Of a stretch of DNA of 64,000 nucleotides, positions 17,087 through 43,489 are shown one piece after another. Under the pieces are notes generated by a model. It was given only the letters and a program-made list of their open reading frames with translations. It was not told the DNA's origin and made no database searches. The position numbers and the translations under genes are program-made. The stretch spans positions 62,001-126,000 of IMG/VR virus record IMGVR_UViG_3300036853_000446. One strand, written 5' to 3'. Each line of letters opens with the position of its first letter. Within the stretch, counting starts at the first letter, position 1.

Positions 17087-17932
17087 TCATTTGACTGGGA
17101 TATCCCAGCTCTTTGTAGCCGCCAGAACGGCCGCCATGTGTTTGCACACGAAATTCTGACGCTCGGGGTCTCGAATGTCGGGCGGCGACGCGGTGCCCAT
17201 CAGAGGTCCGAGTTGATAGTCCTCGGGCCCGGTTGCATGATACTCTGGCCCCTGCCACTGCCACGCCGGACACGAGCACGAGAGTTCGAGGTCCATCTTC
17301 GCAAACTTTGTCGTATTGGCGCGTGGACGGACCGCGCGGATCTTGACCGCGTAGACGTGCTTGCCCTTCACGCTGAAGATCCAGCGCAGATTTTTACGAT
17401 CGGCGCGCTTCAAGGTGACCTTGACCTTGCGAGAACGACTGACAAACTTTGGATTCAGCCCCTCGAGAATGTGCTCGGCCGTCGCCGCGACCCGGGCCGC
17501 CGTGCAGTCCTGATATCGAAGCCGCAGGATCGGGGCGCGCTCGAGCAAGTGAAGCGCCGCAACGAACGCCGGATCTGCGCCCGCGTTGTGGGTGTTCGGC
17601 TTGTCGTCCCGATACGGGTATTTCGTCTTGGACGAGTCGTCGTCCTTGTCGCCCAGGCCCATGAACGACGGGGACGTGCCTCCCTGCTCGACCCAGCGTG
17701 TCTCCGCAGGCAGGTCTTCTTCCTTTGCCCAGCTGTCAGGACCGTCGATCCGATGGGGAGACCCCGGCGCCGTGTCGGGCTCGCGGATGTCTTCCTCCGG
17801 CTTTGAGAACGTCTTGTAACCCACCTCGTCGCCGTCAAGAGAGATACCCTTCCCCGCAGGGCTGCCGCTCGGCAGCTGAGCCGTCGCCCTGGGGTTGAGA
17901 TCCGCTGGACGAGAGACGAGGGGCTCTCTCAC
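17087..17932 (-). CDS. SWIM-type zinc finger protein (281 aa)
   Basis: CSCPAWQWQG...CKH in the C-terminal half, preceded by ARVAA. Confidence 0.65.
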   Translation of the reverse strand: MREPLVSRPADLNPRATAQLPSGSPAGKGISLDGDEVGYKTFSKPEEDIREPDTAPGSPHRIDGPDSWAKEEDLPAETRWVEQGGTSPSFMGLGDKDDDSSKTKYPYRDDKPNTHNAGADPAFVAALHLLERAPILRLRYQDCTAARVAATAEHILEGLNPKFVSRSRKVKVTLKRADRKNLRWIFSVKGKHVYAVKIRAVRPRANTTKFAKMDLELSCSCPAWQWQGPEYHATGPEDYQLGPLMGTASPPDIRDPERQNFVCKHMAAVLAATKSWDIPVK

Positions 17933-20685: not shown

Positions 20686-20695
20686 AAGAGGACTA
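20680..20695 (-). promoter_or_regulatory. CTTTT-core motif copy
   Basis: TAGTCCTCTTTTGAGC, identical to 13115..13130; the TAG is the upstream gene's stop. Confidence 0.55.
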
Positions 20696-22873: not shown

Positions 22874-23752
22874 TCAGAAGCGCGTCACGATGATGCGCAC
22901 CAACCCTCTAGGGTTGTGGGCCCCCAGGCCGAGGTTCTCAAATACAGAAAATCCAATCGTCCGTGCTTTCGGATCATCCGCTGAAAGTACGGTGAGTTCC
23001 GTGCGCACGGGCACTCGACCGAACATCTCTGGCTCGGTCGCCAGATAAATGAATCCGGCGGGAACCAAACGACTCGTGATGATCTGCGCGCCCCACAGAG
23101 TTGCCTGGAGACCCGTCTTCAGCAACGTGGCTTGCGACTCGATATCCAAGATGTCGCGACCAAACTTGCGGATGTCCGCGTAGTCGACCGCATTCATGAA
23201 AATGCGCGCGACCCTCAAGTCGTGGCGTTCGATCTCCGCAAATCCGTCCGCGAGGACGCTCGGCGAGACCGGGGCCACCACGGCCAAGTCTGGGTTCGTA
23301 CCGCCCGCGAGGGTATCGAAGCCGCTGACGGCGATCGAATCGAGTACGGCAAAGACGCGCTCGTCTTCCGCCGCCTGAATCTGGGCCTTCGCGAGGTCCT
23401 GAGCGCGCTCGATGAGGTCGAAGCGACGCTCTTTGATCTGCGTGAGCGGGATCTCGGGGTTCGAGGCGATCTCGAACAGCGGGAAGATCACCCGCCGAGG
23501 CTTTTGAATCGAGACGATGTTCTGGCCTTCCTCGCCGACCACGAACGCTGTGACTTCCGGGTCTTTGTCGTAGATCGGCAAAGCACCGTCAGGCAGCTGC
23601 TCGACGAGGAAGGTCTTTCGACCCACCGCCGTGTAGTCGCGACGAAGGCGTAGGGGTTGAACCATCGAGGCGGCCAACTTGGCGCGCCCTGCCGCAGTCT
23701 TGATGTACTCACTGATGAGTTGCTGCTTGGCTTGGTTTGAAACTTGTTGCAT
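22874..23752 (-). CDS. Major capsid protein, HK97-like (292 aa)
   Basis: Position after protease, scaffold and decoration genes; followed by a strong terminator; FEIASNPEIP...DLIERAQ..AKAQIQAAED..F and terminal GFSVFENLG pattern. Confidence 0.8.
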   Translation of the reverse strand: MQQVSNQAKQQLISEYIKTAAGRAKLAASMVQPLRLRRDYTAVGRKTFLVEQLPDGALPIYDKDPEVTAFVVGEEGQNIVSIQKPRRVIFPLFEIASNPEIPLTQIKERRFDLIERAQDLAKAQIQAAEDERVFAVLDSIAVSGFDTLAGGTNPDLAVVAPVSPSVLADGFAEIERHDLRVARIFMNAVDYADIRKFGRDILDIESQATLLKTGLQATLWGAQIITSRLVPAGFIYLATEPEMFGRVPVRTELTVLSADDPKARTIGFSVFENLGLGAHNPRGLVRIIVTRF

Positions 23753-24519: not shown

Positions 24520-26238
24520 TCAGGAGCCGAACACGCCGCTCACGTCTGGAGCCGAAGACCACATCCCCGAGAGGCGGTTGATCTCTTCTGCGCCCGACGA
24601 CGGCATACCCGTCATTGCACCACCGAGTTGGCTCACGCCCGAGGAGGGACGAGTCCCAACCGTTCGAGTCGAAGCCGTTCTCGTGGCGGCGACCGGTCCG
24701 CGTCCGGACTGGAGCGCCTTTGCCTCGAGAGCCCGCTGCACCTCACCGTCGGAGGCGAAGATCTGCTGGAGAGCCTGATCGTCACCCTCGAACCCGAGAT
24801 CCATCTCCGGGGCGTCCATCTGAATGGATTCTTCAGTGAAATCGCCCTGGTCTTGCAGCATCTGGTCAACGAGATCATCATCCGCCATCAGCTGTTGCTG
24901 CTGGCCGAGCTGCTGCTGTTGACCGAGCCCGATCTGCAGACCCTGCTGCTGACCAATCTGCTGTTGATCCTGTTGCTGGCCAACCTGCTGTTGCTGCTGG
25001 CCAACCTGCTGCTGGTCCTGCTGCTCCTGGGACATCTGCTGCATGGCGTTCTGCACGAGCTGCTGAACCTGCGACTGCACCTGATCCTGAGCCATCGGGG
25101 CGAGCTGCTCGCTTGCGGCCTTGGCCAACCCGGGCAGGGCGACCTTGAAGGCTGCCGGACGGGACTTCACGGGAAGCGCGAGGAGTGCTGCAGCGGCCTG
25201 CTTGATGAGAGCGTAGGCCTCCTTACCCACCTGCTTCTCCTCCTGGCCCTCCTTCTTCTCATCGTCCTCGTCTTCGGCGAACTTGGACCGAGCTTTCAAC
25301 TTGGATTTGGACTTGGCCTGTTTTGATTGGCCCTCGTCGTCATCATCGTCGTCGTCCTGCTGCGCCTTGCGGGCACGAGCCTCTTTGGACTGACCGTCGT
25401 CGTCATCATCGTCGTCGTCCTGCTGCGCCTTCAGACGACGGCGGGCTTCCTTGGACTGACCCTCGTCGTCCTCGTCATCATCATCCTGAGCCTTGCGGGC
25501 CCGGGCTTCCTTGGACTGACCCTCGTCGTCCTCGTCATCATCGTCCTGCTGCGCCTTCAGACGACGGCGGGCTTCCTTGGACTGACTCTTGTCATCATCC
25601 TTGTCCTTGTCTTTCGCCTCGTCCTTCTTCTTCTGAATGTTCTTCAAGAACTCCGGCGGCAGATCTTTGGCCTGCTTGGCCTGACCCTCCTCGTCGTCCT
25701 CATCATCATCCTCGGACGCTTCCTTCTGCTGCCCGTCGTCATCATCGTCATCGTCGTCGTCCTGTTGCTCTTGGGCGAGACGCGCGAGGGTGGTGCGTAG
25801 GTTCGACAGCGGAAGATCCATGAGATTCAGCGCCTGGTCCTCGACGACCTGCTCCAAGGCTGTCCGTGGCAGCATCCGTCGAGCGACTTTGGTGGCGATA
25901 TCGGCCTTGGCGTGAACCTCGGCAATATCCGGGCGGCGCCCCGCTTGGCGGGACGGCGACACGCCGGGGGCCTTGTCGGGGTTGCCGAAGGTGTCCTTGC
26001 GGTACTCCGGCATCCCGATCTGATCCCGTTTGGTATTTCCATCCGGGCCCAGATCTGCCTTCCAACCTTTACCGGGGGGACTCTGGTCCTCGGCGAACTC
26101 GCTCGGGCCCCCGATCACGTAAGCATCTGCTGCCGGTTGTTGCTGAAGATGTTCCTGATTCATCGCTCGAGGATCTTCAGCGACTCTCCTCAACTGGCTT
26201 GCGATTCTCTGACGGCTCCAAGTAGTGCGTTCGCGCAT
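24520..26238 (-). CDS. Capsid scaffolding protein (about 572 aa)
   Basis: Between protease and decoration/capsid genes; acidic tandem repeats and Gln tract; ATG 26238 favoured over 26277. Confidence 0.7.
   Translation of the reverse strand: MRERTTWSRQRIASQLRRVAEDPRAMNQEHLQQQPAADAYVIGGPSEFAEDQSPPGKGWKADLGPDGNTKRDQIGMPEYRKDTFGNPDKAPGVSPSRQAGRRPDIAEVHAKADIATKVARRMLPRTALEQVVEDQALNLMDLPLSNLRTTLARLAQEQQDDDDDDDDDGQQKEASEDDDEDDEEGQAKQAKDLPPEFLKNIQKKKDEAKDKDKDDDKSQSKEARRRLKAQQDDDDEDDEGQSKEARARKAQDDDDEDDEGQSKEARRRLKAQQDDDDDDDDGQSKEARARKAQQDDDDDDDEGQSKQAKSKSKLKARSKFAEDEDDEKKEGQEEKQVGKEAYALIKQAAAALLALPVKSRPAAFKVALPGLAKAASEQLAPMAQDQVQSQVQQLVQNAMQQMSQEQQDQQQVGQQQQQVGQQQDQQQIGQQQGLQIGLGQQQQLGQQQQLMADDDLVDQMLQDQGDFTEESIQMDAPEMDLGFEGDDQALQQIFASDGEVQRALEAKALQSGRGPVAATRTASTRTVGTRPSSGVSQLGGAMTGMPSSGAEEINRLSGMWSSAPDVSGVFGS
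25330..25760 (-). repeat. Acidic tandem repeats in the scaffold gene
   Basis: (QQ)DDDDDDDGQSKEAR(RRLKA or ARKA) units, four SKEAR copies. Confidence 0.85.
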
Positions 26239-26273: not shown

Positions 26274-26289
26274 GCATAAAAGGATTTCA
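26274..26289 (-). promoter_or_regulatory. CTTTT-core motif copy
   Basis: TGAAATCCTTTTATGC upstream of the scaffold; TGA is the protease stop; TCCTTTTATG shared with the 3171 copy. Confidence 0.4.
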
Positions 26290-27822
26290 GATCCCCAAAT
26301 CAAAAAGTCGTCCTTTGGTGATGAGGGCGAGCTTCTCGCTTTGCGTGGGCTCACGCCCGAGGACCCGACCACACGCGGTCAGGTAGGTCGCCACATCTAC
26401 ATAGGAGGCTGCGCCGCCCACCGCGAGCACGGTCCGATAGATCCGAGCCTCCCCAGCGACCGTCGGAGTCTTGTGAAGTAGATCCAAAACCCTAGATATT
26501 GCGAGAACATCGCGTCCCGAGAACCCTCGAGAGGCCTCTACGGCGCGCCACCCGCCGGCTCTGTGCAGGAGCACGCCCTCGGTGACTCGCGCCGCGTTCT
26601 GACGGTCCCCGATGAGGCGCCCCACGGCATGGGCGAGCCGCTGACGCAGGGGGCTCGCGCTCGCCGGGATCAAATTATTGTTGGAATGATCCTCTTCGAC
26701 CTCGTTCCCCGGACTCTTTCCCCCCATGTCCTGACGGATCTTCTGAACCGCGCGGTCGGTGAGCGCCTTGGCGAGATCTTTGACGACCGAGTCGAGTGGA
26801 TCCTTCTCCACTTTAGGACTCGGCTTCTTCCCAGCCCCCTCACCACTCTGATCGGTGTCATCACCGCCACCATCACCGTCATTACCAGCGCCGCCCGGGA
26901 ACTGCTCCTTCTCGTCACCGAAGTCGAGTGCGGTTCGAGCTGCCTTTGCGCGGGCGTTGCGATCAACACGACGGGGCGGCGCACTCAAGGCCACCTGCAG
27001 GCGATCGGTATGGAGATGATTGTAGAGTGAAGCCTCTTCGGGCGAGAGGATGTTTCGGACGACGGCGCCTTTGAAGGCGGGATTGCCAACCCAGGAGGCC
27101 TCTATAAATTTGTTAGAGTTCGGCTCGCTAACATTTCCACACAGCTCTGCAATCTTGCGTTGCGTCCCAAGGATATCGAGAAACGTGTTTCCCTTCTCAT
27201 ATTTTATGTGGGCACAAAGTTCGGTTTCGTCAGCGGCGACGTTGCCGCACTTAGTGCAGGCCGTGAAACTTACATTACAGCCCATCGAGAGCGTCTGGAG
27301 TTGCTTCGAGTTGATCGCCGCGATGAGCGGTCGATGCTTCCGAGCGGTTGCGACGAGAATGTCGATATAGACGCTGTCGCCGATATCGCGGGCGCAAGCG
27401 TCCACGATCTTGCCCTTGCTCATCTCGGGCAGCTGCAAGTGTTCGACGTAGTTTTCCCCGCCTACGAACGTGCGGAACGACGCGAGAAGTAGCTTCCTTT
27501 CCCATGCGTCGTGGTTCGAATTTATATAAGCGCTCGTCTTCGCGGTGATGTAGTAGTCCTGGAACCGTCGATCAACTGTGAACCCGTCCTCGAGGTGACG
27601 CCCGAGAGCCTTCGGACCATTCTCGGTGTCGACCGACGCCACGATAGTGCAATGGGTCAGGAGGTAGTCTTTGGGGGTAAACTCACCGAGGGTAACTTTG
27701 GAGGCACCTCGCCTAGCAAACGCCGACCCTAAAGCTTGCGCGCTGTCGCGCACTCGATCCCAAACCGGCATGTTGATGTCCGGCTTGATGATGTTGGCGT
27801 AGGCGTATTTGGCAAAAGCCAC
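26287..27822 (-). CDS. Prohead (capsid maturation) protease with C-terminal extension (about 511 aa)
   Basis: YVEH, LSMGC, FIEASWVGNPAF fit HK97/assemblin-type proteases; CxxC...C insertion; GTG 27822 has AAAGAAAGGT SD. Confidence 0.65.
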   Translation of the reverse strand: MAFAKYAYANIIKPDINMPVWDRVRDSAQALGSAFARRGASKVTLGEFTPKDYLLTHCTIVASVDTENGPKALGRHLEDGFTVDRRFQDYYITAKTSAYINSNHDAWERKLLLASFRTFVGGENYVEHLQLPEMSKGKIVDACARDIGDSVYIDILVATARKHRPLIAAINSKQLQTLSMGCNVSFTACTKCGNVAADETELCAHIKYEKGNTFLDILGTQRKIAELCGNVSEPNSNKFIEASWVGNPAFKGAVVRNILSPEEASLYNHLHTDRLQVALSAPPRRVDRNARAKAARTALDFGDEKEQFPGGAGNDGDGGGDDTDQSGEGAGKKPSPKVEKDPLDSVVKDLAKALTDRAVQKIRQDMGGKSPGNEVEEDHSNNNLIPASASPLRQRLAHAVGRLIGDRQNAARVTEGVLLHRAGGWRAVEASRGFSGRDVLAISRVLDLLHKTPTVAGEARIYRTVLAVGGAASYVDVATYLTACGRVLGREPTQSEKLALITKGRLFDLGI

Positions 27823-28951: not shown

Positions 28952-31672
28952 TTAGGGAGCCAGTTCCCGCCCGGTGTCGTCCTCGGCTTCGATGACCGCC
29001 GACGACTGATCATCGCCGTACGCAGCCATATAGGGCTCGTCCGAGTCGGTCTCGATGGGCGACATGGGATTTTTGAACGTGTCCATGTAGGGCTCGTCCG
29101 AGTCGCGCTGAAGGACCTGGGCGGCCTTCGCCATCTGCGCGCGCGAGAGGAGGCCCTCGCTCAGTACGCCCCGAGTGAAGCTCTCACTCTCGAGAGCGAC
29201 CTCGGCCTGACGCGCTCGCAGGCTACCCTGGCCATAGACGAGGGACTCGACCGAGTCCGCGATGCGGTCGAGGTGATTGACGAGATGCTTTGCCGCCGTG
29301 AAAGACATCCCCAGCTTCTTGTGGCCGTCCTGGACCCAGCGCGCGAGCTGGTCGATGTTCTGCAGGGTCTGATTCGCGGCCGTCTTTTGTTCACTTGAGA
29401 GTCGCAGCATTTGCCTTACTCCGTTGTCGGTTCTCTTGAAGAGGTTGGTATCTTGTGCCGGGGCAATAGAAGAACTGTCAGCAGTTCGACCGGTCATGGG
29501 GACCTTCACCGTCGTTGCCAGCGTGACGAGTTGGGCGTCGGACAGCTCGTCGAGCGCGACCATCGAGAACGGAGGCTGCTCCAATTGCGCGGCCGTCTCC
29601 CCCGTGAGCAAGACCGTGAGCAGTCCTCTCGCTTTACGTCGTCCGTCGGATGGAAACCTGGCGTACACGGATCTTTCCAGGGCGCCGCGTCCTCGCGCAT
29701 CCTCCGGGAGGCCTATTGGCCTTGATCGACGGTCGAGGGTCGAGGGCATCGGTAATGCGGCGAGATAAGAGGAAACGAGCGTCTTTGCCGCGACCCGGGC
29801 GGCGATTTTCGTGTTCTTCTTCTTGGTCGTCGGCTTCTTCTTCTTCTTTTTGGTGGTTGGCTTCTTCTTCCGCTTGGTTTTCTTCTTCGTCGTTTTCTTC
29901 TTGGTCTTCCTGGTCTTCTTTGCAGGTTTATTTCGATCCTGCAGGTCCTCCCAGAGCCGACGCGCGGCGGCTTTCAGTGCGTCTTCACCCTGAGCATTGG
30001 CGTAGCCAGCTGGCTTCACCGGGGGTATGGGGCGCTTCGGTCTCTTCCCGACCGGGTTCGCCTTCCAAACCTTCCGTGCGTCGTCGTACTCGACCACAAG
30101 CTTCTGGTGCTCGGCAAAGGCCTTGTCGTAGACAGCGGCTTCCTCCACGTCGAGGGTATGACGGACCTTCTTGTATTTCGCTGGCTCGAGACTCTTGAGC
30201 CGCTCGAGCGTCTTGACCTGGAAGCGCTTGGCCCCTTCGTGCCCGTCCTTGTCCCCGTAGGCGCTCGCGCGAACCTTGAAGAAATCGCGCGCCTCCTTCA
30301 TCCCGTCGAGAATGTCGGAGGGATTGTCCGTTTCAGAGATCGCCCCGCGACCCAGATACAACTCTTTGGCATGCTTATAATCGTTTGCCTCCAGGAAGGA
30401 CCGCATGATGGCCTCGCCGCCCTTATGGCCCGAGACCGAGGCCATCATCTTCTTGACGGCCCCCTCCGGAATCCTCTTGAAGCCGCTCGCCGCAGCGGTG
30501 GTCTCGAACACGGAAGTCGCCGTCTTCGAGATCTCTTCCTCCCCGACCTTGCCAAGTAGGGCCCGCGCGACCTGCTGGGCCGCGAGGGGGGAGACCGATC
30601 CGTCAAATGAGAGCTTCTGTTCGAGCTGGTGCTGCACCGCGTAACTCATCGCCACGACCTGCATCTGGTGCTGGTGGTAGGCGTCCGCCTTCTCCTGCCG
30701 GGGGAGTGAATCGAATGCGACCGTTTTGCCCTTCGCGTTGCGCCAGCTCTTCGGAGGCTCGACGCGATCCGGATCCGTTTGGTAGACCGTCGCCACCTTG
30801 GCCGCGAACTCCGCCGGGTTGCCCACCGGCTGGGTCATCGTGGCCCGATAGTTCTCGATGAACGCCTTGGCGTCGTCCGGATGGATCTCGTCCGCGATCA
30901 GCTGGGCCGCGAGTTTAGACGGAACGCTGTCGACCAGGAGAAGGGTCGTTTCCACGCGCTCCGCCGCCGACACCTCGCGTTGCTTCGGAGCCCCAATGCG
31001 CAGCTTCTTGGCGACCGACGGCGGAGGCGGAGGCTTCTTCTCTTCTTCCTCCTCGTCACTATCATCATCGTCATCGTCGCTATCATCATCGTCATCGTCA
31101 TCGTCGCTATCATCATCGTCGTCTTCCGACGGATCCGACTGCTTCTGTGGCGTGACTTTAGCCGCAGGATCAGGGCCCTTCCCAGCCGCAGGATCGGGAG
31201 TCTTGCCGGGTGCAGCGCCGGGCTTTGGAGCTTGGCTTTGGGGTTTCGACGGAGGGGGCGCGACGTAGTCCGGATCCCCCTTTTTCGGCGGCGGATCCCC
31301 CTTTTTCGTCTTCCATTTCTCGTACTTGCTCGGCTCGGCCTTCAGGGTCTCCTCAGTAATGAAGACCTTCTTGCCCGTATCCCTGCTTCGCGCCGGGATC
31401 TTCTTTCCTCTCGTTCCGGGCGAACTTGCCTCGTGGTGCAAGAAGCGCAGGGCCAGCCGATCCCGCATCGAACCGCCAATGTTCTTGTAATTGAGCGAGG
31501 TGTCCTTTCCCTGGAGGTCCGGATCGGAGTCCGTGTCAGGATCGCGATCGACCTCCATACGCTCTCGACGTCGATCCCGACGGGGCGGCTTCTTCTCCGG
31601 CGCGGGCCGAACGAGGCGCTCCGCCTCCTCGTCTTCCCTCTCGACCGGTGGGAGTGTCGCGAGCCTCAGCAT
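28952..31672 (-). CDS. Large low-complexity head-associated protein (906 aa)
   Basis: Immediately downstream of portal; acidic tract, Lys tract, RLALRFL and ARVAAK motifs, DSDEPYM x2. Confidence 0.7.
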   Translation of the reverse strand: MLRLATLPPVEREDEEAERLVRPAPEKKPPRRDRRRERMEVDRDPDTDSDPDLQGKDTSLNYKNIGGSMRDRLALRFLHHEASSPGTRGKKIPARSRDTGKKVFITEETLKAEPSKYEKWKTKKGDPPPKKGDPDYVAPPPSKPQSQAPKPGAAPGKTPDPAAGKGPDPAAKVTPQKQSDPSEDDDDDSDDDDDDDDSDDDDDDSDEEEEEKKPPPPPSVAKKLRIGAPKQREVSAAERVETTLLLVDSVPSKLAAQLIADEIHPDDAKAFIENYRATMTQPVGNPAEFAAKVATVYQTDPDRVEPPKSWRNAKGKTVAFDSLPRQEKADAYHQHQMQVVAMSYAVQHQLEQKLSFDGSVSPLAAQQVARALLGKVGEEEISKTATSVFETTAAASGFKRIPEGAVKKMMASVSGHKGGEAIMRSFLEANDYKHAKELYLGRGAISETDNPSDILDGMKEARDFFKVRASAYGDKDGHEGAKRFQVKTLERLKSLEPAKYKKVRHTLDVEEAAVYDKAFAEHQKLVVEYDDARKVWKANPVGKRPKRPIPPVKPAGYANAQGEDALKAAARRLWEDLQDRNKPAKKTRKTKKKTTKKKTKRKKKPTTKKKKKKPTTKKKNTKIAARVAAKTLVSSYLAALPMPSTLDRRSRPIGLPEDARGRGALERSVYARFPSDGRRKARGLLTVLLTGETAAQLEQPPFSMVALDELSDAQLVTLATTVKVPMTGRTADSSSIAPAQDTNLFKRTDNGVRQMLRLSSEQKTAANQTLQNIDQLARWVQDGHKKLGMSFTAAKHLVNHLDRIADSVESLVYGQGSLRARQAEVALESESFTRGVLSEGLLSRAQMAKAAQVLQRDSDEPYMDTFKNPMSPIETDSDEPYMAAYGDDQSSAVIEAEDDTGRELAP

Positions 31673-33525
31673 CAGAAGCGCCCACCACCGCCGCCGCCCT
31701 CATCGGGCTCCGCAGGGGCGGGTTTCACAGTGAGCTTGAGATACTGCGCGACGCGCTCCGTCACGTCCGTTTTTTCGGCGAGCAAACGACCGACCTCGTT
31801 GCCGACCGAACGGATGATCTCGTTGAACATCGCGTCGTTGACCGTAAAGAGATCCCGCTCGAGCTTGGATTTCGTCTCGTCCGGATCGATGTTCAGCATC
31901 TCCAGGATGAGGTCGACGCTGATCGAGCCCTTTTGATAGAGGTTAAAGAGAGCGTCGAACGTGTCCTGGCTATCCCGTAGCGGAAGGCGCGTGAAGCTGA
32001 GCCGCGGGAACAGGACGACTTCCTGACCCCACTGGTCCTTCTCGACGAAGCCCATCCGGCGGGCGACGGGCTTGAACAGCGACTCTTCGACGTAGTCCTG
32101 GAGGATCTCCCGCAGGTGGAGATACCGCGTGTTGATGACCTCGAGCTTGAGTCGATCGCCCGAGTAGAGAGACTCGCCGCTCATCAGGCTCTCGGTGACG
32201 CCGAGCCCGGAAAGGAGCCGGCGCTCCGTCTGCTCGTACTCGGCGCTCAAGTCGAGTAGGCGGTCTCGAGACCCCATCTCCTCCCAACGTATCTCGTAGT
32301 TCGCGACGATCGAGTAATCGGGGTCGACGAGCGCGAGATCGACTTGCTGCCGGAGAGCCTCCGTGTCGGCATCGGACAAGCCTTCCGCCCAAATGATGCG
32401 CTTGGGCGTCATCGCGCGCGACGCGATCGAAGTCTGCGCTTGCCGGAGCTTCTCCCTAAAGTACAAGGTTCTCAAGCATCTATCGAGAATGCTCTGTCCG
32501 ATATCGGCGTCAGCATGCTTTCTCGCCATCAACAAATGAACGAAGCTTCCTTCGTCGGGGTCCGAGCCCATCGGAATGAGCTGTCCCTGCTCCATGTATT
32601 GACGGACTTCGGCCGGAATTTCCTCGGCCATCTCCTGCGCTATCGGATCCCCTTGCTTGGCCTTATCGAGCAGAGCGCGGTCGCGATCGCTCGGAATGAG
32701 TTCGCATTTGACCTTGTCCGTAAAGCTGAAGGTCGTGATCTTGACCTTGTCGATCGGCAGGATGATGAGCTGCTGCCAACCCTGATAGTTCTTCTGATAA
32801 TGGGTCAGCTCTTGCGCCTCGCCGTCGTCCTTCGGAGTCCAGACTTCCTCCTCGAACTCCCGCGGCTCCCCCCCATCCGTCAGCTCGGCGCGCTTCTCGA
32901 CATGCCGCGTGTGGCCAACGTCCATCGGGGTCTCGACCGCGCTATCTTCAGCAAATACGGCCACATTGCCGTCGAGCCAAAAATGATGAACCATCGTGAT
33001 GAGGCGCTGAAACAGCTTCACCCGCTGGCACATCCGCTCGAACCGACTGAGGATGTACTGGCCGTAGTCATGGGCGTCTTTGAAGCCCTCCGGACATGTC
33101 CTCGGCTTCGGCGGGGCGAGCCTCACTTTCGAGAGGGGCAGCTCCGTATGCAGGTCGATCGCCTGCCCGACGAGTTCGTCGGTGTTGTAAAAATGCCGGT
33201 AGATCTCCCGCTTCTCTCGAAGCGACTGCGGCAACTCCAAAAAATCCGTCGACAGCTGGGGACTAAAGAAATTGTCCCCGCTGCTCATCATCGTGTTGCC
33301 CATGGCGGACGACGACCCGAAGCCGCTCATCCCCATGCCGCCCATGCCGCCACCCAGGCCGCCACTCATGCCCGAGGCCTTCTTGGAGAGCTGGCGCGCG
33401 AGACGCTCCTTGGGCGTCAAGGTCGACTGAAAGCCGCCGGACACGTACGGTCGCGTAAGCCGCTGCTCGGTCCGAGCGATGGTCCGCCCCCCTGGCTGAT
33501 TTGAGAGCCACCCGTCACGAGCCAT
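31672..33525 (-). CDS. Portal protein (617 aa)
   Basis: Near terminase and upstream of protease; large-phage portal-like segments (FY.TD.LV..AIDLH, SILDRC.R.L..REKLR.AQ, LLSGLGV..SL.SG). Confidence 0.75.
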   Translation of the reverse strand: MARDGWLSNQPGGRTIARTEQRLTRPYVSGGFQSTLTPKERLARQLSKKASGMSGGLGGGMGGMGMSGFGSSSAMGNTMMSSGDNFFSPQLSTDFLELPQSLREKREIYRHFYNTDELVGQAIDLHTELPLSKVRLAPPKPRTCPEGFKDAHDYGQYILSRFERMCQRVKLFQRLITMVHHFWLDGNVAVFAEDSAVETPMDVGHTRHVEKRAELTDGGEPREFEEEVWTPKDDGEAQELTHYQKNYQGWQQLIILPIDKVKITTFSFTDKVKCELIPSDRDRALLDKAKQGDPIAQEMAEEIPAEVRQYMEQGQLIPMGSDPDEGSFVHLLMARKHADADIGQSILDRCLRTLYFREKLRQAQTSIASRAMTPKRIIWAEGLSDADTEALRQQVDLALVDPDYSIVANYEIRWEEMGSRDRLLDLSAEYEQTERRLLSGLGVTESLMSGESLYSGDRLKLEVINTRYLHLREILQDYVEESLFKPVARRMGFVEKDQWGQEVVLFPRLSFTRLPLRDSQDTFDALFNLYQKGSISVDLILEMLNIDPDETKSKLERDLFTVNDAMFNEIIRSVGNEVGRLLAEKTDVTERVAQYLKLTVKPAPAEPDEGGGGGGRF

Positions 33526-35357: not shown

Positions 35358-35413
35358 ATCCTGCAGCTACACCGGTTGACCTCTATGACTTTCGGAAGTT
35401 ACGGTTTTCGCAG

Positions 35414-35829: not shown

Positions 35830-35849
35830 CTCAAACCGAGTGCGGTTCC

Positions 35850-37079
35850 TCAGCTATAAAACTTGAGAACCTGACGGATTGCAGCCGGTGGGACCCGGTA
35901 CTCGCGCTCGCCTCCGTGGAGCGATATACCCGGGTACTCCATGTCGACCTCCACCGAGACAACGCCGATGTCCTTGGGATCTGCATCCTTTAGGTAGGCG
36001 ATGAGCTTATGCCGATTCATGTGTACGGGATTCAGGCGACTCGTTTGGACGTACAAAAAGGCATCGTACACGTTGAACACATCGATCGGGTCGCTCAGTA
36101 CCTCGTCTATGTCCCGCTCCTCGGACGCATGACCGATGGCTTTTACCGTCAGGACCCACCGACGTCCGTTGTGCGTGAGGTCCTGATATTGCTTCTTAGC
36201 CTGGCTACCGAGCCAAAGCAGAAACTCTTCGATGTTGCCTTCTCGAAGGCCCCAATCGAGAATCTGTGACGCTTTGATTTGCCCGGTGGCGATCAAGGCG
36301 GCCTCTTTGAATGAGCGGGCGATATCCAAGGCTGCCTTCAGGTCGTACGTGAACGAAATCCCATTGCCACCGGACTTCAAACTCTGCGAGCCTCCGAGGC
36401 CGATCTGGTCCTTGGGCATCTCGGCGGAGAAACCCCGTTGGTAGATTTCCCGTGCCTTGACCGATGCGTGATAGAGTGTCTCGACTTTGCCTGGCTTGGC
36501 GTCACCGGTCTCGAAGGCCTCGAGCTGAGCCAACTTGCCATCTAAGAACATTACGAGCTTGCGAGTCTCTTCGGCGAACTCCTCGAGAATTTTCAGGGGC
36601 TCCGGCATCAGGCCAACCTCATCCATTTCATTCCAGGCGAATCTATCCAGGTTCGTCAGCGCCGTCCCGAGGCCGCGAAGAGTAGCGCCATACTTATATT
36701 GATCCTTGTCGAGAACATTCGCAACGGCCTCCACCAACGGCCGCGCAAACCTATCCAACATGTGGGGATTCTTAGGCGCCAATTGGTTGAGGTAATGAAA
36801 CGCGGAGTCGAGGTCATTCTGGTGGCGGTTCAGTGCCTCGCGAATCTTCGACCACGTGGGCAGCCCGACCTTGGCCAACACCTCTTCTTTCAATGACTGC
36901 CAGTTAGCCTTCTCAGCAAGCTCGGTTGCCAACGCCATGAGCTGTATGAGGCCCTTCTTCGTGTCCTTCTCGAGGGCTTTCAGAAAAACGAGGATTCTGC
37001 GAGGCGGCAGGATGAGGGCACGTCTCGAAAATCCCCCGAGCGTGAGGTAACGTTGGGCAACGCGGGCAGAGAGATTCAT
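35850..37079 (-). CDS. ADP-ribosyltransferase-fold protein with N-terminal RVA motif (409 aa)
   Basis: TLYHAS...RGF...GNGISFT.D...A..IA and C-terminal GGEREYRVPP; N-terminus MNLSARVAQRYL. Confidence 0.6.
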   Translation of the reverse strand: MNLSARVAQRYLTLGGFSRRALILPPRRILVFLKALEKDTKKGLIQLMALATELAEKANWQSLKEEVLAKVGLPTWSKIREALNRHQNDLDSAFHYLNQLAPKNPHMLDRFARPLVEAVANVLDKDQYKYGATLRGLGTALTNLDRFAWNEMDEVGLMPEPLKILEEFAEETRKLVMFLDGKLAQLEAFETGDAKPGKVETLYHASVKAREIYQRGFSAEMPKDQIGLGGSQSLKSGGNGISFTYDLKAALDIARSFKEAALIATGQIKASQILDWGLREGNIEEFLLWLGSQAKKQYQDLTHNGRRWVLTVKAIGHASEERDIDEVLSDPIDVFNVYDAFLYVQTSRLNPVHMNRHKLIAYLKDADPKDIGVVSVEVDMEYPGISLHGGEREYRVPPAAIRQVLKFYS

Positions 37080-37142: not shown

Positions 37143-39152
37143 TTACCTTGCGAAACGAAGAGATCCTCGGCGACCGCCCCCCGGCGCTTGCCGCGGGGGC
37201 AGACCGTGCTGGCGGGCTCGAAGGGCACGGAAATTGGTCATCGTGGCCGCGGAGGCGGCAAAGGGCCGGTTGTCACTGTACCCGTGCGAGATGAATTTCT
37301 CCGAACTCATCTCGAGGAAGCAGAGCCAGACCGAACGAACGTAGGCGTCGGCAAAATCGTCATGAGCGCCCTTCTTCTTGGGAGCTGAGACAATGACGAC
37401 GTCCTTCGCCACGCTCTTCGCGCGTAGACTCAAAAGCTCGTCGATGTGCGGCGAATGCCTGGCGGCCCCTACCTCGATCGAGTGTTTCGGGAGCGGGAAA
37501 TCGTAGATGAGGAGCGTCTCGTTGTACATCATCGATTTCGTCGCCTGGTACATCTTCGAGGTCTGGTCTCGCGTAAAATGCTCAGACGTAAACTGTTTGA
37601 GGCCTTTCTTCGTCAGCGACTGTTCGAGCGGAATGCCGTTCCAGCGATCGAAGAGGCCCTGCTTGATGTGAAAGCGCCTCGTGATCAGGTGGATCCAATC
37701 GGCGATCTGGTCGAAATCGAGCCGTTGCACGTCTTTCAACGTCTTCGAATACTCGGTCGAATACTGCCCGAGCAAATGCGGATTCGTCTCCCGCCAGTCT
37801 TCACCCGCGCGCCAGCCCTCGTGGTAGTCGAGAACGATCCTGTCCTGCTCGATATGGTTGACGACGATGAACGTCCCGTCGTCGACCAATCCGACATCGA
37901 TTCCCATGTTGTGGGGGCGCCGCGGGGGACCCCTCGTGATGGGCCGCGATTCGGGCTCGATGCAGGCCTGGAGGTCCTCTTCCCGCTCGATCCAGCCCGA
38001 CAGTTGGTCGCTGAACTGAGCCCCGTACTCGACGTTGAACGACGTCGCGTCCGAATAGTAAGCCTGCTGGAGGTCAGAGAGCGGAACCGTCGGGTTGACC
38101 TCCCAGGTCGGAGCTTGGATCCCGAGCATGTTCGTCGCGCCTTTGCCCCCTCGCATGGCCTGGTCGAACAGCTCGAAGAAGCGCCCCGATTTTCCCAACG
38201 GAGACGAGATGCAGACGACCCTCGATTCCTTGCCTCCTACGGGCAACATGGGGTTGGTCGGGTCCTTCGGGGAGAAGGCCGCGGCGGACGGCGTGACGGA
38301 GGTATAGATCTCTTCGGCGCTCCCGGGGCCCGTATCCAGAAAGTGCGCGAACTCGTCGAGAATGATGACGATGTTGCCCGCGCCACGGAGTCCTTTGCCG
38401 GTAGCGCCCTTGAAGGTCAGCCGAACGCTCGCCTTGCCGCTGAACGAGGTGTATTTCCCGTTCTCTCGATAGATCGCGCCGTATTTGTCGATGTCGAATG
38501 GCGTCCGAAAGTTGACCTGGCTCTGCGTGTTGTTCGCCTGGTACGGTCGAAAGTAATCGCATTTGGCGAGATGGCCCGCCACCTCGTTGAACAGAATGCC
38601 GGCCTGATCCTTGTCCGTGGCGACCGAGATGATCTGGATCCGGTTGCCGTCGGGCAAGCCGTAGTAGGCTTGCGGGTTATAAAGATTGAGGAGACGATAG
38701 ACCTCGTAGCTAGCAAAGACCGCAGAAAGCGCCGTCTTCCCAGCGCGCCGACCGAGCGCGAGGAATAGATCGCGCCGCTCGTGGTCCTGCGCGCCGATGT
38801 TGCAGCGCCCCTGGTTGAAAAGGTACTCGAGGTATTGCTTCTCCGTGAACGTGTACCGGGTATTGCCCGTGAGCACGTCGCGGACCTTGATCCGGAGGTA
38901 ATCCTCCTCCGGCAACGTGTCGTCGAGTTCGAGGAAATAGTAGAGCTTGACGATGAATCGCTGCACCGGAAATAGGGTCATGTGCAGACCCCAGTCCGAT
39001 TCGATGTATTCGAGGATGTTGAAAACGTTGTCAGCGGACGTGACGCGCTGACCGTCGACCGCCGGGGCCTTCCTCAAGGCATCGCGCTTCGCGTCTTGAC
39101 CCGCCTGGCGAATGAGCCCGGCCAGACCGGGCTTTGGAGGAAGCGCCGCCAT
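37143..39152 (-). CDS. terL: Terminase large subunit (669 aa)
   Basis: Walker A LGRRAGKT, Walker B IILDEFAH, CISSP coupling motif, nuclease IDVG and HDDFADA. Confidence 0.9.
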   Translation of the reverse strand: MAALPPKPGLAGLIRQAGQDAKRDALRKAPAVDGQRVTSADNVFNILEYIESDWGLHMTLFPVQRFIVKLYYFLELDDTLPEEDYLRIKVRDVLTGNTRYTFTEKQYLEYLFNQGRCNIGAQDHERRDLFLALGRRAGKTALSAVFASYEVYRLLNLYNPQAYYGLPDGNRIQIISVATDKDQAGILFNEVAGHLAKCDYFRPYQANNTQSQVNFRTPFDIDKYGAIYRENGKYTSFSGKASVRLTFKGATGKGLRGAGNIVIILDEFAHFLDTGPGSAEEIYTSVTPSAAAFSPKDPTNPMLPVGGKESRVVCISSPLGKSGRFFELFDQAMRGGKGATNMLGIQAPTWEVNPTVPLSDLQQAYYSDATSFNVEYGAQFSDQLSGWIEREEDLQACIEPESRPITRGPPRRPHNMGIDVGLVDDGTFIVVNHIEQDRIVLDYHEGWRAGEDWRETNPHLLGQYSTEYSKTLKDVQRLDFDQIADWIHLITRRFHIKQGLFDRWNGIPLEQSLTKKGLKQFTSEHFTRDQTSKMYQATKSMMYNETLLIYDFPLPKHSIEVGAARHSPHIDELLSLRAKSVAKDVVIVSAPKKKGAHDDFADAYVRSVWLCFLEMSSEKFISHGYSDNRPFAASAATMTNFRALRARQHGLPPRQAPGGGRRGSLRFAR

Positions 39153-39752: not shown

Positions 39753-41702
39753 TCAAACCAGGTTGATGGCGTTATTCCCAAACTGAACCGAGGCATCGAA
39801 CGACACGCCCGGGGGGTTCAATTCCAAAGTTCCGGCGCCCTTCAGCTCGAACTCCTGCAGCATCGTCATCCCGTTGTTGACCAGGCTCGCGTAGTCCGAC
39901 GTCGCCGTAGCGAGCCCGCTCGCGAGGATGGCGCGCTGCTGAGCGAGCTTGTCTTGATAGGGCGGTTCGTTCGCGAGCCGCTTGTTCAGCACCGAGCACA
40001 CCCCGATCTCGGTCTGGTGGATGCACGACGCGCATTTGTCGCCGACCTTCGCGTAGCGTACGGCGTTCCGGGACCGGTGAAGGCGCTGGGCTTCCTTGCA
40101 GCCCTTGCCGTAGTCGTCGTAGACCGTTGGGTCGACGAAATAGATGCCCTGGAGGCCCTGGTTATTGGCGACGGCGCGGCGCAATTCACTCCCGGCCGCC
40201 ACGAGATCACGGGGGTCGAATTTGGACTGCATGACCGTCTGCAGCTCGGAGCCATAAAGACCCTCGTTCATGAGTCTCGAGGCCGTTTTGAGAATTTCCC
40301 GCCGCGTGAGAGTGCCCGTTGCGTGCTCCTGTCGGAGGCCACGGAAGGCCCTCTGTACGGTCGCACGTGCCGCGTCTACCGCCGTCGGTAACGGGGAAGA
40401 GGCCACCTTGTGAATGTTCTGCAGGGCGCTACGCGGGGTCGCGCCCCAATCCACGCGATGGGCGGAAGCGGGGATCGTGCCGGCGATCTTATGCTCGTCG
40501 AGCACGGCCGAGACGGTCTCCGGCGTATAGATCTCGTCGACGCTGGCGACGAGCTTCCGACCGTACATCAAGCAACGGCCGACCTTCGAAAAGATGCACG
40601 AAGGGCATTTGTCACCGGCAACGATGGCTCGAATCTTGGACCCGTGCTTGCTCAGGAAATCCGCCCCTTCGCGGCAGTCATCGAAGCTATCCTGAGTCGA
40701 ATAGACAACCCCGTAGAGGCCCGCCTCTCTGATGAGCGGTGCCCAATGGTCCTTCGTTGCCTCGAGGTCCCGCACATCGAAAGCGAGCCGCATTCCGTGG
40801 CGGATCTCGTCAACGTTTCGACCCTTGAGCAGCTCCCGTCGCAGGGTCTCCACGATGGGCCGCGCCCTTGCCGCCTCGACGGATCTGGCCTCCTTCGCGA
40901 GGTCCACGGGTTTACGAAGCAGCCGGGACGCCGGGATGAGCGCGCCATCGTTCTTTTGACCGGAAAAGACGGAAGGCTTGAGCGCCCGCCGGCCCAGATA
41001 CGCCGCCTTGACGCGCGCTTTCGGATCGGAAACGCCGCTCGGGGATACGCCGGACGCGGCGCGCGTCGACTCGACGTTCGAGGCAAGCTCTTCCGAGTAT
41101 TCGACGGCCGGAACCAATTCCTTGTGGAAGATGCCGCAGCGGCTCCCGCCCGACGGCCCCTGCTGCTTGTGACAGCAATCGCCGCACGCCTTTTTCATGG
41201 CCACGAAGCGGGCACTCGACGCATAGCGACGAACGAAGGCTTCGGCGGCAGGGTCCTCCGCGCACGCCGGGAAATCGCTCGCCGCGACATACACGCGCCC
41301 GAGAAGACCCCGTTCGGCGAGGATCTCCGTCAACCCCTGCTTGTTTCTCGCAATCTCTTCTCGCGAGAATTTCGAAAGCAATGTCTCTTGCCAGCGCCGA
41401 GTGTCGTCCGACTGCATGAGGCTGAGGCGCGCGAGTCGCATGAGCGGGCCGTCCTGATGAATAGGCGACACGTCCACCCTGCGCAGAGCGTTGGGATATC
41501 CCGCCGTATCGCGATTGGGCACGAAATAAACGACCGGGTCGTATGCCTCGTGAGACCACTGCGCCTTCAACTCGGGGACGATGTCGTGATTCTGCCTGGG
41601 CAGCGTCTCGAGCGCCCTGTACTGCGCCTCGTCAACGTCCAGCCAGTCGTAGTTGCACGGGCTTTCATCTGCAAGGATATGCGTGAGATCGAAATCGGAC
41701 AT
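39753..41702 (-). CDS. Protein with three Cys4 repeat domains (649 aa)
   Basis: Three C...CxxC...C-x4-K-x-L units. Confidence 0.7.
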   Translation of the reverse strand: MSDFDLTHILADESPCNYDWLDVDEAQYRALETLPRQNHDIVPELKAQWSHEAYDPVVYFVPNRDTAGYPNALRRVDVSPIHQDGPLMRLARLSLMQSDDTRRWQETLLSKFSREEIARNKQGLTEILAERGLLGRVYVAASDFPACAEDPAAEAFVRRYASSARFVAMKKACGDCCHKQQGPSGGSRCGIFHKELVPAVEYSEELASNVESTRAASGVSPSGVSDPKARVKAAYLGRRALKPSVFSGQKNDGALIPASRLLRKPVDLAKEARSVEAARARPIVETLRRELLKGRNVDEIRHGMRLAFDVRDLEATKDHWAPLIREAGLYGVVYSTQDSFDDCREGADFLSKHGSKIRAIVAGDKCPSCIFSKVGRCLMYGRKLVASVDEIYTPETVSAVLDEHKIAGTIPASAHRVDWGATPRSALQNIHKVASSPLPTAVDAARATVQRAFRGLRQEHATGTLTRREILKTASRLMNEGLYGSELQTVMQSKFDPRDLVAAGSELRRAVANNQGLQGIYFVDPTVYDDYGKGCKEAQRLHRSRNAVRYAKVGDKCASCIHQTEIGVCSVLNKRLANEPPYQDKLAQQRAILASGLATATSDYASLVNNGMTMLQEFELKGAGTLELNPPGVSFDASVQFGNNAINLV

Positions 41703-41704
41703 TC

Positions 41705-43489
41705 TTACCTCGTAGCCTCGCCGTCGGGAGCAAAGGGCTCTTGATTTGATTGACCCGGGGAAAGGCCATCTGGTTGCCTGATGGTGTGCGTCGTAAAATC
41801 GTAGCGCTCGTATCCCGTGTCCACGTCATCGAGCGTGTAGTAGGTGTTGAGCAGGTCCTGACCGCTCTCACTATGGGTGTCTTCGGGCGTCGGCATCTCG
41901 GACGTGCCAATCGACACCAAGTTGTCTTTGGGCCCCGAGTAATAGTCGGACCGCGCCACGTCACCGGCGACGTCCTGTGGCAGTCGCCCGTAGAGAGCGT
42001 CCTGAGCCTGCCGGTGGAGCGCGCCGATCTCCGGCGTCGAGTCCCCCGCTGAGTCCCCCGCTGACTGCGGCACTGTGCCGGGTAGCCCGCTCTGGGGGCC
42101 CCAAACACCCTTCGTTCCGTTGCCTTCACCGGAAGGGTTTGCGTAGCCGCCGGCACCTTCCCCGCGCGCGCCGTAGCCGATGCCGAAATCCCACGCTTCG
42201 GTGGGCGTGTCGTCCGAGTTGGAATCCGGAATACCCGCCGAAGCTTCGGGAGCCTTCCACATCGCGCTGAGGTTGCGCCAACGCTGGTATCCGCGGTGGT
42301 CACCCTCCTCGACACGAACATAGTAGTCCATGACCTTCTCCCAATCCTGGGCGTTCCAACGCCCGAACTGGTGGGTCGTCAACTTCAGCGCTCTGGCAAT
42401 GCCCTTCGTCTCCCCCGGACTCGTGTGTTCCCACCAGTCCTCGATCTCGTCTGCAGTAGGTGCCCTGGCCGCGGCCGCGGCTGCCCGGGACAGGTCATTC
42501 TCAGCCGGACTCTCGGACTCGTTAAAGTCGCCGTAATCGCCCGTCCCTGTCCCCGGGCCCAGGTGATTGACGCGCGGACCGCCCGGAAGCTCCGCCACGG
42601 GCTCCGACGAGTTCGCTTTCTCGAGGCTACGAGAGGCCTTCTTTGGCGGGACGACGTAGATGGCTTGAGCCAGTTGCTCTGCCAACGGCGTCTCTACTGA
42701 CGCGATGCAGCCAGGGCGCGTAGGGTCCGTGTAAAACTCGTGGACCCAGGCCCGGTCAGACATACCTGACGATCGAGACTTCCAGGAGGCTTCCTTCGTC
42801 CGACCGGGAACGTCGTCACCATGCACCTCGCCCTCCGCCTGCGAGGCATCGGCGGTGGGTAAGCCGGACGCCCCCTCGCCCTCGGCGTCGTCGGTCTTCG
42901 GCTTCTTCTTCTTTCTCTTCTTTGACTTCGGCTCTTCAGGCTCGTCCTCCGACTCGCTCTCGCCCTCGATTTCGTCGATCTCGTCCTCAGCCTCGCCCTC
43001 GGGATTCTCCATGACGTCTTGCGCCTCTTCGACGAAGCGGGTCACGTCCTCCTGGTCACTCGGATCGAGCTGAGCGAGTTTCGGCTTCCAATGCGGCGCG
43101 TTGATCTCGTCGAACATGGTGTCGGAGATCGCCGACAAGGCTTCCGAGGCCTCGAAGAGCTTTTGCCGCATGTCGGCAAGCTTCATCACGTACCCGCGCC
43201 CACCCATCAGGCCATCAGGACTCACCGTCGTGCTCTTGAGACGGCTCAAATGCCGGTACGCCGTGAGCGTGTGGCCGAGCGCGACGGTCGAGGCCCAGAA
43301 CGCCTTCGACAGCGGTTTGAGCGCCCTCGCTTGGAACTCGTGATCCTTGGGAATGTTGCGCTTCCCCGCCGACGTCAGATCCTCCGAGCCCGATCCGTTC
43401 TGAGAAGACGGCGGAAACGCCGCGGTCTTCCGCCGCTCAGGCGACGACAGATGCCGAGCCGCGACTCGGGCGCTAGAGGGATCACTCAT
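41705..43489 (-). CDS. Large low-complexity protein, probable internal head protein (594 aa)
   Basis: N-terminal SARVAARHL and RKTAA; helical domain followed by acidic/Gly-rich segments bounded by KEAS, KKAS, KANS. Confidence 0.65.
   Translation of the reverse strand: MSDPSSARVAARHLSSPERRKTAAFPPSSQNGSGSEDLTSAGKRNIPKDHEFQARALKPLSKAFWASTVALGHTLTAYRHLSRLKSTTVSPDGLMGGRGYVMKLADMRQKLFEASEALSAISDTMFDEINAPHWKPKLAQLDPSDQEDVTRFVEEAQDVMENPEGEAEDEIDEIEGESESEDEPEEPKSKKRKKKKPKTDDAEGEGASGLPTADASQAEGEVHGDDVPGRTKEASWKSRSSGMSDRAWVHEFYTDPTRPGCIASVETPLAEQLAQAIYVVPPKKASRSLEKANSSEPVAELPGGPRVNHLGPGTGTGDYGDFNESESPAENDLSRAAAAAARAPTADEIEDWWEHTSPGETKGIARALKLTTHQFGRWNAQDWEKVMDYYVRVEEGDHRGYQRWRNLSAMWKAPEASAGIPDSNSDDTPTEAWDFGIGYGARGEGAGGYANPSGEGNGTKGVWGPQSGLPGTVPQSAGDSAGDSTPEIGALHRQAQDALYGRLPQDVAGDVARSDYYSGPKDNLVSIGTSEMPTPEDTHSESGQDLLNTYYTLDDVDTGYERYDFTTHTIRQPDGLSPGQSNQEPFAPDGEATR

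Follow-up and report, generated by a model that had tools for sequence, protein, structure and literature searches.

The stretch of DNA considered here (hereafter the window; 64,000 nucleotides, positions 62,001 to 126,000 of the IMG/VR virus record IMGVR_UViG_3300036853_000446) is, judged by its sequence, part of a phage-G-like megaphage of 407,634 bp. It carries a head gene block, and two short peptide motifs that recur in the products of this block are the subject of this study: R-V-A-x-R-[YFHMW]-L, called the tag below, and the three-residue pattern [KR]-x-A. The window is assigned to the phage-G-like megaphages on the basis of its major capsid protein (MCP; 292 amino acids (aa), 22874..23752; phrog_2522, E 2e-51), which shares 83% identity with the MCP of LR745208.1, an uncultured 485-kb phage, 49% with that of Tunturiibacter phage Tunturi_5 and 40% with gp27 of Bacillus phage G (PDB 6WKK). 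The genes and motifs considered here are all on the minus strand. PHROG profiles name four of these genes, i.e. those for the MCP, a candidate head maturation protease (26287..27822), the portal (31672..33525) and the large terminase TerL (37143..39152). In 15 related contigs, cited below by L numbers where they have to be told apart, gene order is kept from a sigma factor gene through to the MCP gene: sigma factor, proteins of 310, 594, 649 and 194 aa, TerL and portal, then a protein like the 906-aa protein of the window, a 241-aa protein, the protease, the scaffold, a decoration protein and the MCP. Particular to the window phage are a gene for an ADP-ribosyltransferase (ART)-like protein and a DNA methyltransferase gene between TerL and portal; no homologue of the former was found at this position in the relatives, nor in LR745208.1.

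A peptide motif on unrelated proteins

Two proteins of the head block carry the tag close to their N-terminus: it reads SARVAQRYL at residues 4-12 of the 409-aa ART-like protein (gene 35850..37079; tag 37044..37070) and SARVAARHL at residues 6-14 of the 594-aa protein (gene 41705..43489, syntenic with those for the 649-aa protein and TerL; tag 43448..43474). The initial annotation had the lower coordinate of both right, 37044 and 43448, and had left out the Ser codon that brings each tag to 27 bases; every string it quoted is present on the minus strand where it had been placed, as checked string by string. A third copy, RLALRFL (31439..31459), is internal, at about residue 72 of the 906-aa protein (28952..31672), whose gene lies between those for portal and protease and which, by synteny, is a candidate internal or ejection protein. 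These are the three matches of the regular expression R[VL]A.R[YHFMW]L in a six-frame translation of the window, every one of them in the true frame, and the expression matches again in the relative L003, which had played no role in its definition. Since the two N-terminal tags have only 14 of 27 bases in common and differ in their synonymous codons, the repeat lies in the peptide and not in the DNA, and an origin as a DNA-level repeat is ruled out; chance is ruled out by shuffles and by the recurrence in independent genomes. At the level of the peptide, R-V-A-x-R-[YFHMW]-L is a real motif.

A position matrix built from 30 hand-collected instances and applied with a threshold of >=12 bits to 13 loci (104,700 residues) gave 38 matches against 1.95 in shuffled sequences, about half of the 38 being sequences that had been used in building the matrix. 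Half of the matches (19/38) fall within the first 40 residues of their proteins, which hold 13.6% of all residues, i.e. a 3.7-fold enrichment. Overall, the tag, which recurs in eight genomes besides that of the window phage, is found on at least ten unrelated families, about 13-20-fold over shuffles, and on unrelated proteins in L003, L005-L007, L010, L012, L013, L015, L017, L018, L021, L022, L025 and L026. Within the window the matrix matches head-block proteins only, and the replication and tail proteins are without a tag.

The 409-aa protein is the candidate cargo enzyme of the window phage. It is laid out as tag, PPR motif, variable helical bundle and conserved C-terminal domain, and most of its 22 homologues (24-58% identical) begin with M-x(2-6)-[SA]-x-R-V-A-x-R-[YF]-x, followed by about 200 highly variable residues; next to the tag, the 22 show no conserved [KR]-x-A. 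AlphaFold2 models the protein with a predicted local distance difference test score (pLDDT) of 83.7 and residues 1-20 as a short detached helix (pLDDT <50). Three blocks are invariant in the homologues, ETLYHAS, ISFTYD and GEREYRV (Y-H-A-S, S-F-T and G-E-R-E), and fit the ART catalytic signature [HR] ... S-x-[ST] ... E-x-E. Furthermore, the Atlas language-model look-alikes of residues 192-409, namely NarE, Pertussis_S1, Scabin-like, Tse2 ART and PARP (scores 0.90-0.93), all belong to the ART clan. No sequence match was obtained in Pfam, PHROG, NCBIfam or PDB, and a Foldseek search with the whole chain returned helical bundles only. The 'ART' label, which is based on the look-alikes and the H / S-x-T / E-x-E pattern, is a lead only.

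In the orthologues of the 594-aa protein, for which Atlas was uninformative, the N-terminal tag is looser (SRVAGRML, ERVARRAM, RRLIARYL, LAALRRHL, AVLDRHL). Nine residues past the tag, the window protein has the sequence K-T-A-A (43418..43429), a candidate site of propeptide cleavage: 9 of 10 orthologues show [KR]-x-A-[AGE] in the same alignment columns, 10-25 residues past the tag, in a region that is otherwise poorly conserved.

Two further strings listed as tag copies in the initial annotation, AARVAAK in the 906-aa protein (29783..29803) and AARVAA in a 281-aa SWIM-finger protein (17483..17500), are degenerate in the window, but their orthologues carry strong motifs at the same positions. 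AARVAAK, which lies past a poly-Lys linker about 280 residues ahead of the C-terminus, aligns with ERVAARFL (L006), SRVASRYL (L010) and RVVVRHL (L007), and AARVAA with IRVAARMSEIL (L003, 23.5 bits) and QRVAARYLG (L025). The first tag of the 906-aa protein, RLALRFL, likewise corresponds to SRVLARFL (L006), ARVLRRW (L013) and TRVLSRYL (L025). The C-terminal domain of this protein, about 130 aa, is an open reading frame (ORF) of its own in L005 and L006. Of its two extreme low-complexity runs (29830-29990 and 31080-31150), one is a Lys/Thr-rich stretch (KKTRKTKKKTTKKKTKRKKKPTTKKKKKKPTTKKK) directly ahead of the second tag and the other a poly-Asp/Glu run following a Pro-rich segment. At the DNA level, the two AARVAA sites (29786-29799 and 17485-17498) share 14 identical bases, GCCCGGGTCGCGGC, among them a CCCGGG palindrome; this identity may be chance, and the strong N-terminal tags differ in codon usage.

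A tag-like sequence, ATKVARRMLP (25867..25896; 15.0 bits with the position matrix), is also present in the N-terminal domain of the scaffold. RRVAED near the scaffold N-terminus (26173..26190), by contrast, was mistaken for a copy of the tag: it aligns with KQADP (L026), KKADDP (L027) and RTADP (L025), which makes it a conserved site of the type [KR]-x-A-[DE]-(D)-P.

Relatives have additional tagged families, i.e. a protein of about 135 aa encoded between the 649-aa and 194-aa genes and absent from the window, a protein of about 100 aa near the sigma factor gene, proteins of 180, 270 and 300 aa adjoining ART homologues in L021 and L022, and proteins with a C-terminal tag. In L021 the tagged ART homologue is situated among nucleotide-metabolism genes; the tag thus travels with the protein and not with the head gene block. 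A genome-wide scan of LR745208.1 (482 kb stitched, 581 ORFs called, threshold >=13 bits) gave 16 tags against 1.2 in shuffled sequences, seven in the head module and nine scattered. The shared R-V-A-x-R peptide is real and conserved across families and genomes, but it is neither strictly N-terminal nor, as had been supposed, a property of the head block alone. Among the scattered tags of LR745208.1, two flank a 2H-phosphoesterase (LigT/Acb1-like) domain at residues 16 and 193 of a 497-aa protein, in which [KR]-x-A occurs 14 times against 6.4 expected and which is a candidate for a packaged counter-defence enzyme. This protein (L035 4195-5688, i.e. LR745208.1 347195-348688) matches 2_5_RNA_ligase2 (E 5e-13) and, weakly, the anti-CBASS protein Acb1. 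Three other scattered tagged proteins have a C-terminal E-x-F-x-E-x-F motif in common, and one of them shows HExxH.

A second type of tag may exist as well. In phage G (NC_023719.1, positions 1-32000; L020), gp5, gp9, gp10, gp12, gp13, gp17, gp20 and gp38 have a common basic N-terminus, for example MKRLIKK, LSRIKKI, LTRLKKI or SRLKKTA, and gp13 reads MKRLISKTAARYAAS, where the basic N-terminus is joined to the AAR-Y core of the tag. In L003, two paralogues (4894-5949 and 13172-13576) start with MTTLRSKLIRLAH..P.LRP.LLPLLKEA.

K/R-x-A sites in head proteins and the candidate protease

Compared with expectations from within-protein shuffles, the head-block proteins of the window contain [KR]-x-A 174 times against 116 (z 6.0), whereas the non-head proteins have 111 against 126, which bears out the difference between head and other genes anticipated in the initial annotation. 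The excess persists without the scaffold (152 against 108, z 4.7) and is directional, with the mirror pattern A-x-[KR] and the neighbouring patterns [KR]-A, A-[KR] and [KR]-x-x-A flat at about 1.0; after a poly-Asp signal, K-x-A ranks as the most enriched gapped pair of the window. Ten of ten related loci show the [KR]-x-A excess, and in L003, L010 and L018 K-x-A ranks first of 400 gap-1 pairs. In the AT-rich phage G, gp1-39 have 86 [KR]-x-A against 56.7 expected and 67 K-x-A against 39.6. In Tunturi_5, K-x-A is found 88 times against 57.5; the [KR]-x-A excess lies in the protein between protease and MCP, i.e. at the scaffold position (20 against 7.7), and in an annotated DNA ejection protein (25 against 13), and is missing from the sheath and fibre proteins of the tail. 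An unbiased scan of about 1,400 combinations of residue pair and gap placed K-x-A first in Tunturi_5 and second in phage G. As a control, the same scan of gp67, gp68, gp21 and gp22 of phage T4 returned I-x-E and L-x-E as the top two pairs, and nothing in T4 tail proteins; the method thus recovers the known specificity of the T4 protease gp21.

In LR745208.1, the genome total of [KR]-x-A is near expectation (1058 against 1046) and that of the head region is 139 against 104.5. Five of its top seven [KR]-x-A proteins belong to the head module (the homologue of the 649-aa protein, the scaffold, the protease and two small proteins), and a sixth is the doubly tagged phosphoesterase. The 649-aa homologue has the highest z-score (5.4) among 316 proteins; the Cys-rich 649-aa protein of the window itself (39753..41702) has 21 sites against 10.1 expected. 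No excess is seen in the MCP (3 against 3.7), which is without a delta domain. The N-terminal arm of the portal carries K-K-A-S (33373..33384) just ahead of a Gly/Ser-rich stretch, and a [KR]-x-A ahead of such a stretch recurs in the portals of L003, L006, L007, L013 and L017 and in phage G gp14.

The residue that follows [KR]-x-A is preferentially Ser and, less strongly, Ala in every head set, which is not the case in the non-head genes of the window; when an extended consensus was sought in the flanks, this preference at P1' was all that was found. The sites are also conserved in position. In the window, 35% of orthologue comparisons retain [KR]-x-A against 18% for the mirror pattern, with 56% against 22% in the protease, 40% against 15% in the 649-aa protein and 13% against 9% in TerL.

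Sites are dense in the scaffold-like protein, an acidic, Gln-rich protein that probably starts at M14 (24520..26238; 22 sites against 8.8 expected). At the same gene position, the counts are 10 against 5.0 in L025, 15 against 4.9 in L026, 9 against 4.5 in L027 and 8 against 3.8 in phage G (gp21). Between poly-Asp runs, the scaffold of the window contains units of the type G-Q-S-K-E-A-R, K-Q-A and K-F-A (25273..25731). The four SKEA units to which the initial annotation had drawn attention are present, but they all lie in one DNA tandem array (25331-25599, period 63/126) and are therefore not independent. The Tunturi_5 scaffold, which is unrelated in sequence, has S-K-E-A-K units.

The protease candidate matches phrog_18299 ('head maturation protease', E 1.3e-9) and phrog_2774 (E 4e-22). 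Its gene lies between those for the portal and for scaffold and MCP in the same order in the window, eleven relatives, Tunturi_5 and phage G, and the Tunturi_5 homologue carries a protease annotation. The assignment to this family, made from the PHROG match and synteny, is weak. An N-terminal catalytic domain of about 290 aa, as we read the layout, is followed by a variable linker and a helical C-terminal domain; His57, His128, Ser179 (within SMGC) and a four-Cys cluster are invariant. K-A-A-R behind the protease domain (26935..26946), which the initial annotation had recognized as closing this domain, is conserved and a candidate site of self-release. In all homologues with a PAFxGA anchor (118/118), [KR]-[ASV]-A, usually as K-A-A-R, follows 26-40 residues past the anchor and directly precedes a hypervariable linker; ten of the 118 have the tag-like K-A-A-R-[YFHW] there, and Tunturi_5 and phage G have K-V-A-S. 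Some head-protease homologues (P0035, P0060, P0062 and P0069) and one TerL (L026 1-2200, with a LAGLIDADG domain) are interrupted by inteins (PF14890, PF05203).

A possible protease code and docking signal

The sequences show that the two motifs exist, with their statistics, specificity, direction, conservation and distribution; what we infer from them concerns cleavage, the scissile bond, docking, packaging and injection. We propose that a K/R-x-A|S/A code of the prohead protease and a docking tag jointly organize head assembly in the phage-G-like megaphage clade, and give this proposal a probability of roughly one half. The protease would enter the prohead, free itself at the conserved K-A-A|R junction behind its own catalytic domain and cut after the Ala of [K/R]-x-A, with Ser or Ala preferred as the next residue; it would thereby chop the scaffold into short peptides at its dense K-x-A sites and trim the N-terminal arm of the portal as well as large internal proteins. 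R-V-A-x-R-[Y/F/H]-L would be a short, basic and amphipathic helix, carried on a flexible linker or terminus, through which otherwise unrelated proteins dock to one and the same partner within the prohead as it assembles; in this way they would be packaged and, probably, injected. Cargo of this kind would include the ART-like enzyme of the window phage and, in LR745208.1, the 2H-phosphoesterase and the HExxH proteins. After recruitment, tagged proteins may be trimmed at or after the tag: since R-V-A is itself a [KR]-x-A and the 594-aa family has a second site, the tag is probably removed after loading, as in T4.

By analogy, the functionally closest known system is the capsid targeting sequence of T4 together with gp21. 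There too, a short peptide is common to otherwise unrelated proteins, a likely trimming site lies next to it, and a three-residue protease motif, (L/I)-x-E in the case of gp21, is dense in scaffold and core proteins; an ADP-ribosyltransferase is among the candidate cargo, and T4 Alt is annotated as a protein of the capsid that enters the host along with the DNA. The megaphage tag, however, has a different sequence, is basic-amphipathic and may be internal or C-terminal, the P1 residue would be Ala instead of Glu, and hhalign detects no sequence relation to gp21, the megaphage system being known from sequence alone. Encapsulin cargo-loading peptides provide another parallel, as a short terminal peptide docks unrelated enzymes inside an HK97-fold shell; these peptides have another consensus, are usually C-terminal and involve no protease. 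With respect to cleavage after Ala, the herpesvirus assemblin is of interest, which frees itself from its scaffold fusion at YLQA-T and VQA-S (PMC4498786). Like pUL26, the megaphage protein appears to have its protease domain at the N-terminus, followed by a linker and a C-terminal domain, with a conserved x-A site ending the protease domain and a small residue (Ser, Ala or Thr) coming next, but P3 is basic here and hydrophobic in assemblin, the sites are many and spread over many proteins whereas pUL26 has two (R and M), and the megaphage scaffold is a separate gene; no match in sequence or modelled fold was detectable. Finally, phiKZ gp175 and SPN3US gp245 process many head and ejection proteins, with propeptides and repeated motif copies, at (S/A/G)-x-E (PMC10052503). 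These are also giant phages in which many head-internal proteins have repeated protease motifs and the protease cuts itself, but P1 is Glu there and would be Ala here, and the present lineage is phage-G-like with a small 292-aa MCP; a comparable shared address peptide is not described in the papers that were consulted.

Several observations weigh against the proposal. Whole-locus scans do not have K-x-A at the top in L025-L027, where Gln repeats dominate. TerL and portal are mildly enriched in [KR]-x-A, so that part of the excess is noise; for TerL, noise is the probable explanation because its sites lack conservation (13%). At the point where its C-terminal domain forms a separate gene, the 906-aa family has a [KR]-x-A in three of six lineages only. 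The protease candidate has no match in Pfam, NCBIfam or PDB, a profile search and hhalign against T4 gp21 came back empty, and its AlphaFold2 model, computed from six sequences, has a pLDDT of 44. The tag matches outside the first 40 residues are internal or C-terminal, so the tag is not strictly an N-terminal signal, and across genomes it is also found on enzymes encoded far from the head genes. It is moreover modelled as a helix, whereas protease substrates usually bind in an extended form, and for its docking partner there are candidates only, i.e. the scaffold, the inner face of the MCP or the C-terminal domain of the protease. For any member of the clade, the case for cleavage and packaging is statistical or comparative, and the papers on phage G multi-omics, the phage G tail and jumbo-phage capsids report no cleavage sites. 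Both parts of the targeting and protease system envisaged in the initial annotation came through the computational checks suggested there, and through some stricter ones, and are plausible: the head-specific, directional and replicated [KR]-x-A excess and the conservation of the tag have held up; confinement of the tag to the head block has not.

An important question is whether the [KR]-x-A excess reflects a protease code at all or is a by-product of the helical, Lys/Ala/Glu-rich style of scaffold-like proteins and of their internal repeats. The excess is indeed strongest in low-complexity scaffolds, with the four SKEA units forming a single tandem array, [KR]-x-x-x-A is mildly enriched too (z 3.2), the T4 core proteins have a weak K-x-A excess (12 against 7.1), and TerL is enriched without being a protease substrate. 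Such a style does not readily account, however, for the flat A-x-[KR], [KR]-A and [KR]-x-x-A counts, an excess that survives removal of the scaffold and replicates in distant AT-rich and GC-rich relatives with unalignable scaffolds, the consistent Ser/Ala preference at the next residue, a positional conservation twice that of the mirror pattern and an invariant site behind the protease domain, nor for a scan that finds the true motif in T4; we regard a mere by-product as quite unlikely. If the code is real, the tag could still be nothing but an extended high-affinity site of the prohead protease, [KR]-V-A|A/S-R-[YF], with other contacts bringing the proteins in. Its R-V-A core is a [KR]-x-A, followed by Ala or Ser in about three-quarters of the 30 hand-collected instances, many protease homologues have K-A-A-R-Y-[LHIM] at the self-release position, and internal copies lie in linkers of large proteins. 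Yet removal of 5-10 residues hardly explains six residues conserved on both sides of the bond in unrelated families, ordinary [KR]-x-A sites have no conserved P2' and P3', and the helical model and the tags on enzymes encoded far away also fit poorly, which makes a pure cleavage site an unlikely, if reasonable, alternative.

The tag might also bind a partner outside the capsid, such as a ClpX-like unfoldase or chaperone of the phage (as a degron or for delivery), the transcription machinery or a host target. In L021, three tagged genes have a ClpX-like gene between them, phage G encodes ClpX and ClpP, both of which were detected in its particles (PMC12484599), and about half of the tagged LR745208.1 proteins have their genes elsewhere than in the head module. 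Tags in the scaffold, in the family adjoining the portal and in the linker of the protease are difficult to reconcile with such a partner, as is their absence from the replication and tail proteins of the window. Moreover, the scattered LR745208.1 protein that bears two tags is one of the highest scorers for [KR]-x-A, a link between the tag and the head-protease code; a non-capsid partner seems improbable.

The joint system of protease code and docking tag may be taken one step further, in that R-V-A-x-R-[YF]-L could be a portable signal for capsid loading, functional wherever in a protein it lies, with the protease of the clade sharing the Ala|Ser/Ala bond of assemblin; this extension is tentative and we consider it more doubtful than the proposal itself. 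If the signal is portable, one could read directly from sequence which effector proteins the uncultured phage-G-like megaphages inject, with the ART-like enzyme, the Acb1/LigT-like phosphodiesterase and the HExxH proteins as candidates so far. If the Ala|Ser/Ala bond is common to assemblin and these phages, it would suggest an old specificity within the HK97-fold virus lineage, and if a phage protease has a specificity of the Ala|Ser type, capsid maturation in phages and in herpesviruses would be tied more closely together. Hardly any megaphage has been cultured, and for the majority of their genes no function is known. From a readable loading label together with a protease code, one could tell which proteins are carried in the capsid and are the first to act in the host, and the code would define mature protein boundaries for structural work; a functional tag could also be used for loading foreign proteins into very large capsids. 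We know of no description of this tag sequence or of a K/R-x-A specificity in a phage, and none of this sort was found in the literature, in which subscription papers were mostly beyond reach. Two relatives, phage G and Tunturi_5, are in culture, so that the predictions can be tested directly.

Neighbouring genes

Between TerL and portal, positions 34050-37079 of the window hold an N6/N4 DNA methyltransferase gene and the ART-like gene, where L006, L007, L013 and L025-L027 have a gene for an 83-84-aa protein and three tandem paralogues of about 165-190 aa with the motif RTRDCV.F.KG ... GW.GGQG. Of these genes, the window retains a homologue of the small protein only (35414-35653). Just upstream of the 594-aa homologues lies a conserved gene of about 90-175 aa, which corresponds to the C-terminal part (...LWSLRKDGHGEFYIERMFDDSGSPLKG) of the window ORF 43492-44040; the true start of this ORF is probably internal, because its long N-terminal extension overlaps the 310-aa gene. 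Between the 310-aa gene and the sigma factor gene, the window has a gene (44770-45798) for a 342-aa protein in which three HNH-endonuclease-like units follow one another in tandem (phrog_374 matches three stretches). Finally, a 918-aa protein (17929-20685) contains a duplicated unit of about 40 residues, at about residues 445-487 and 688-730, which reads DDEKLSR[YF]EEGKSADPTK.MS..DAKEWKANTEEH.D.FK.

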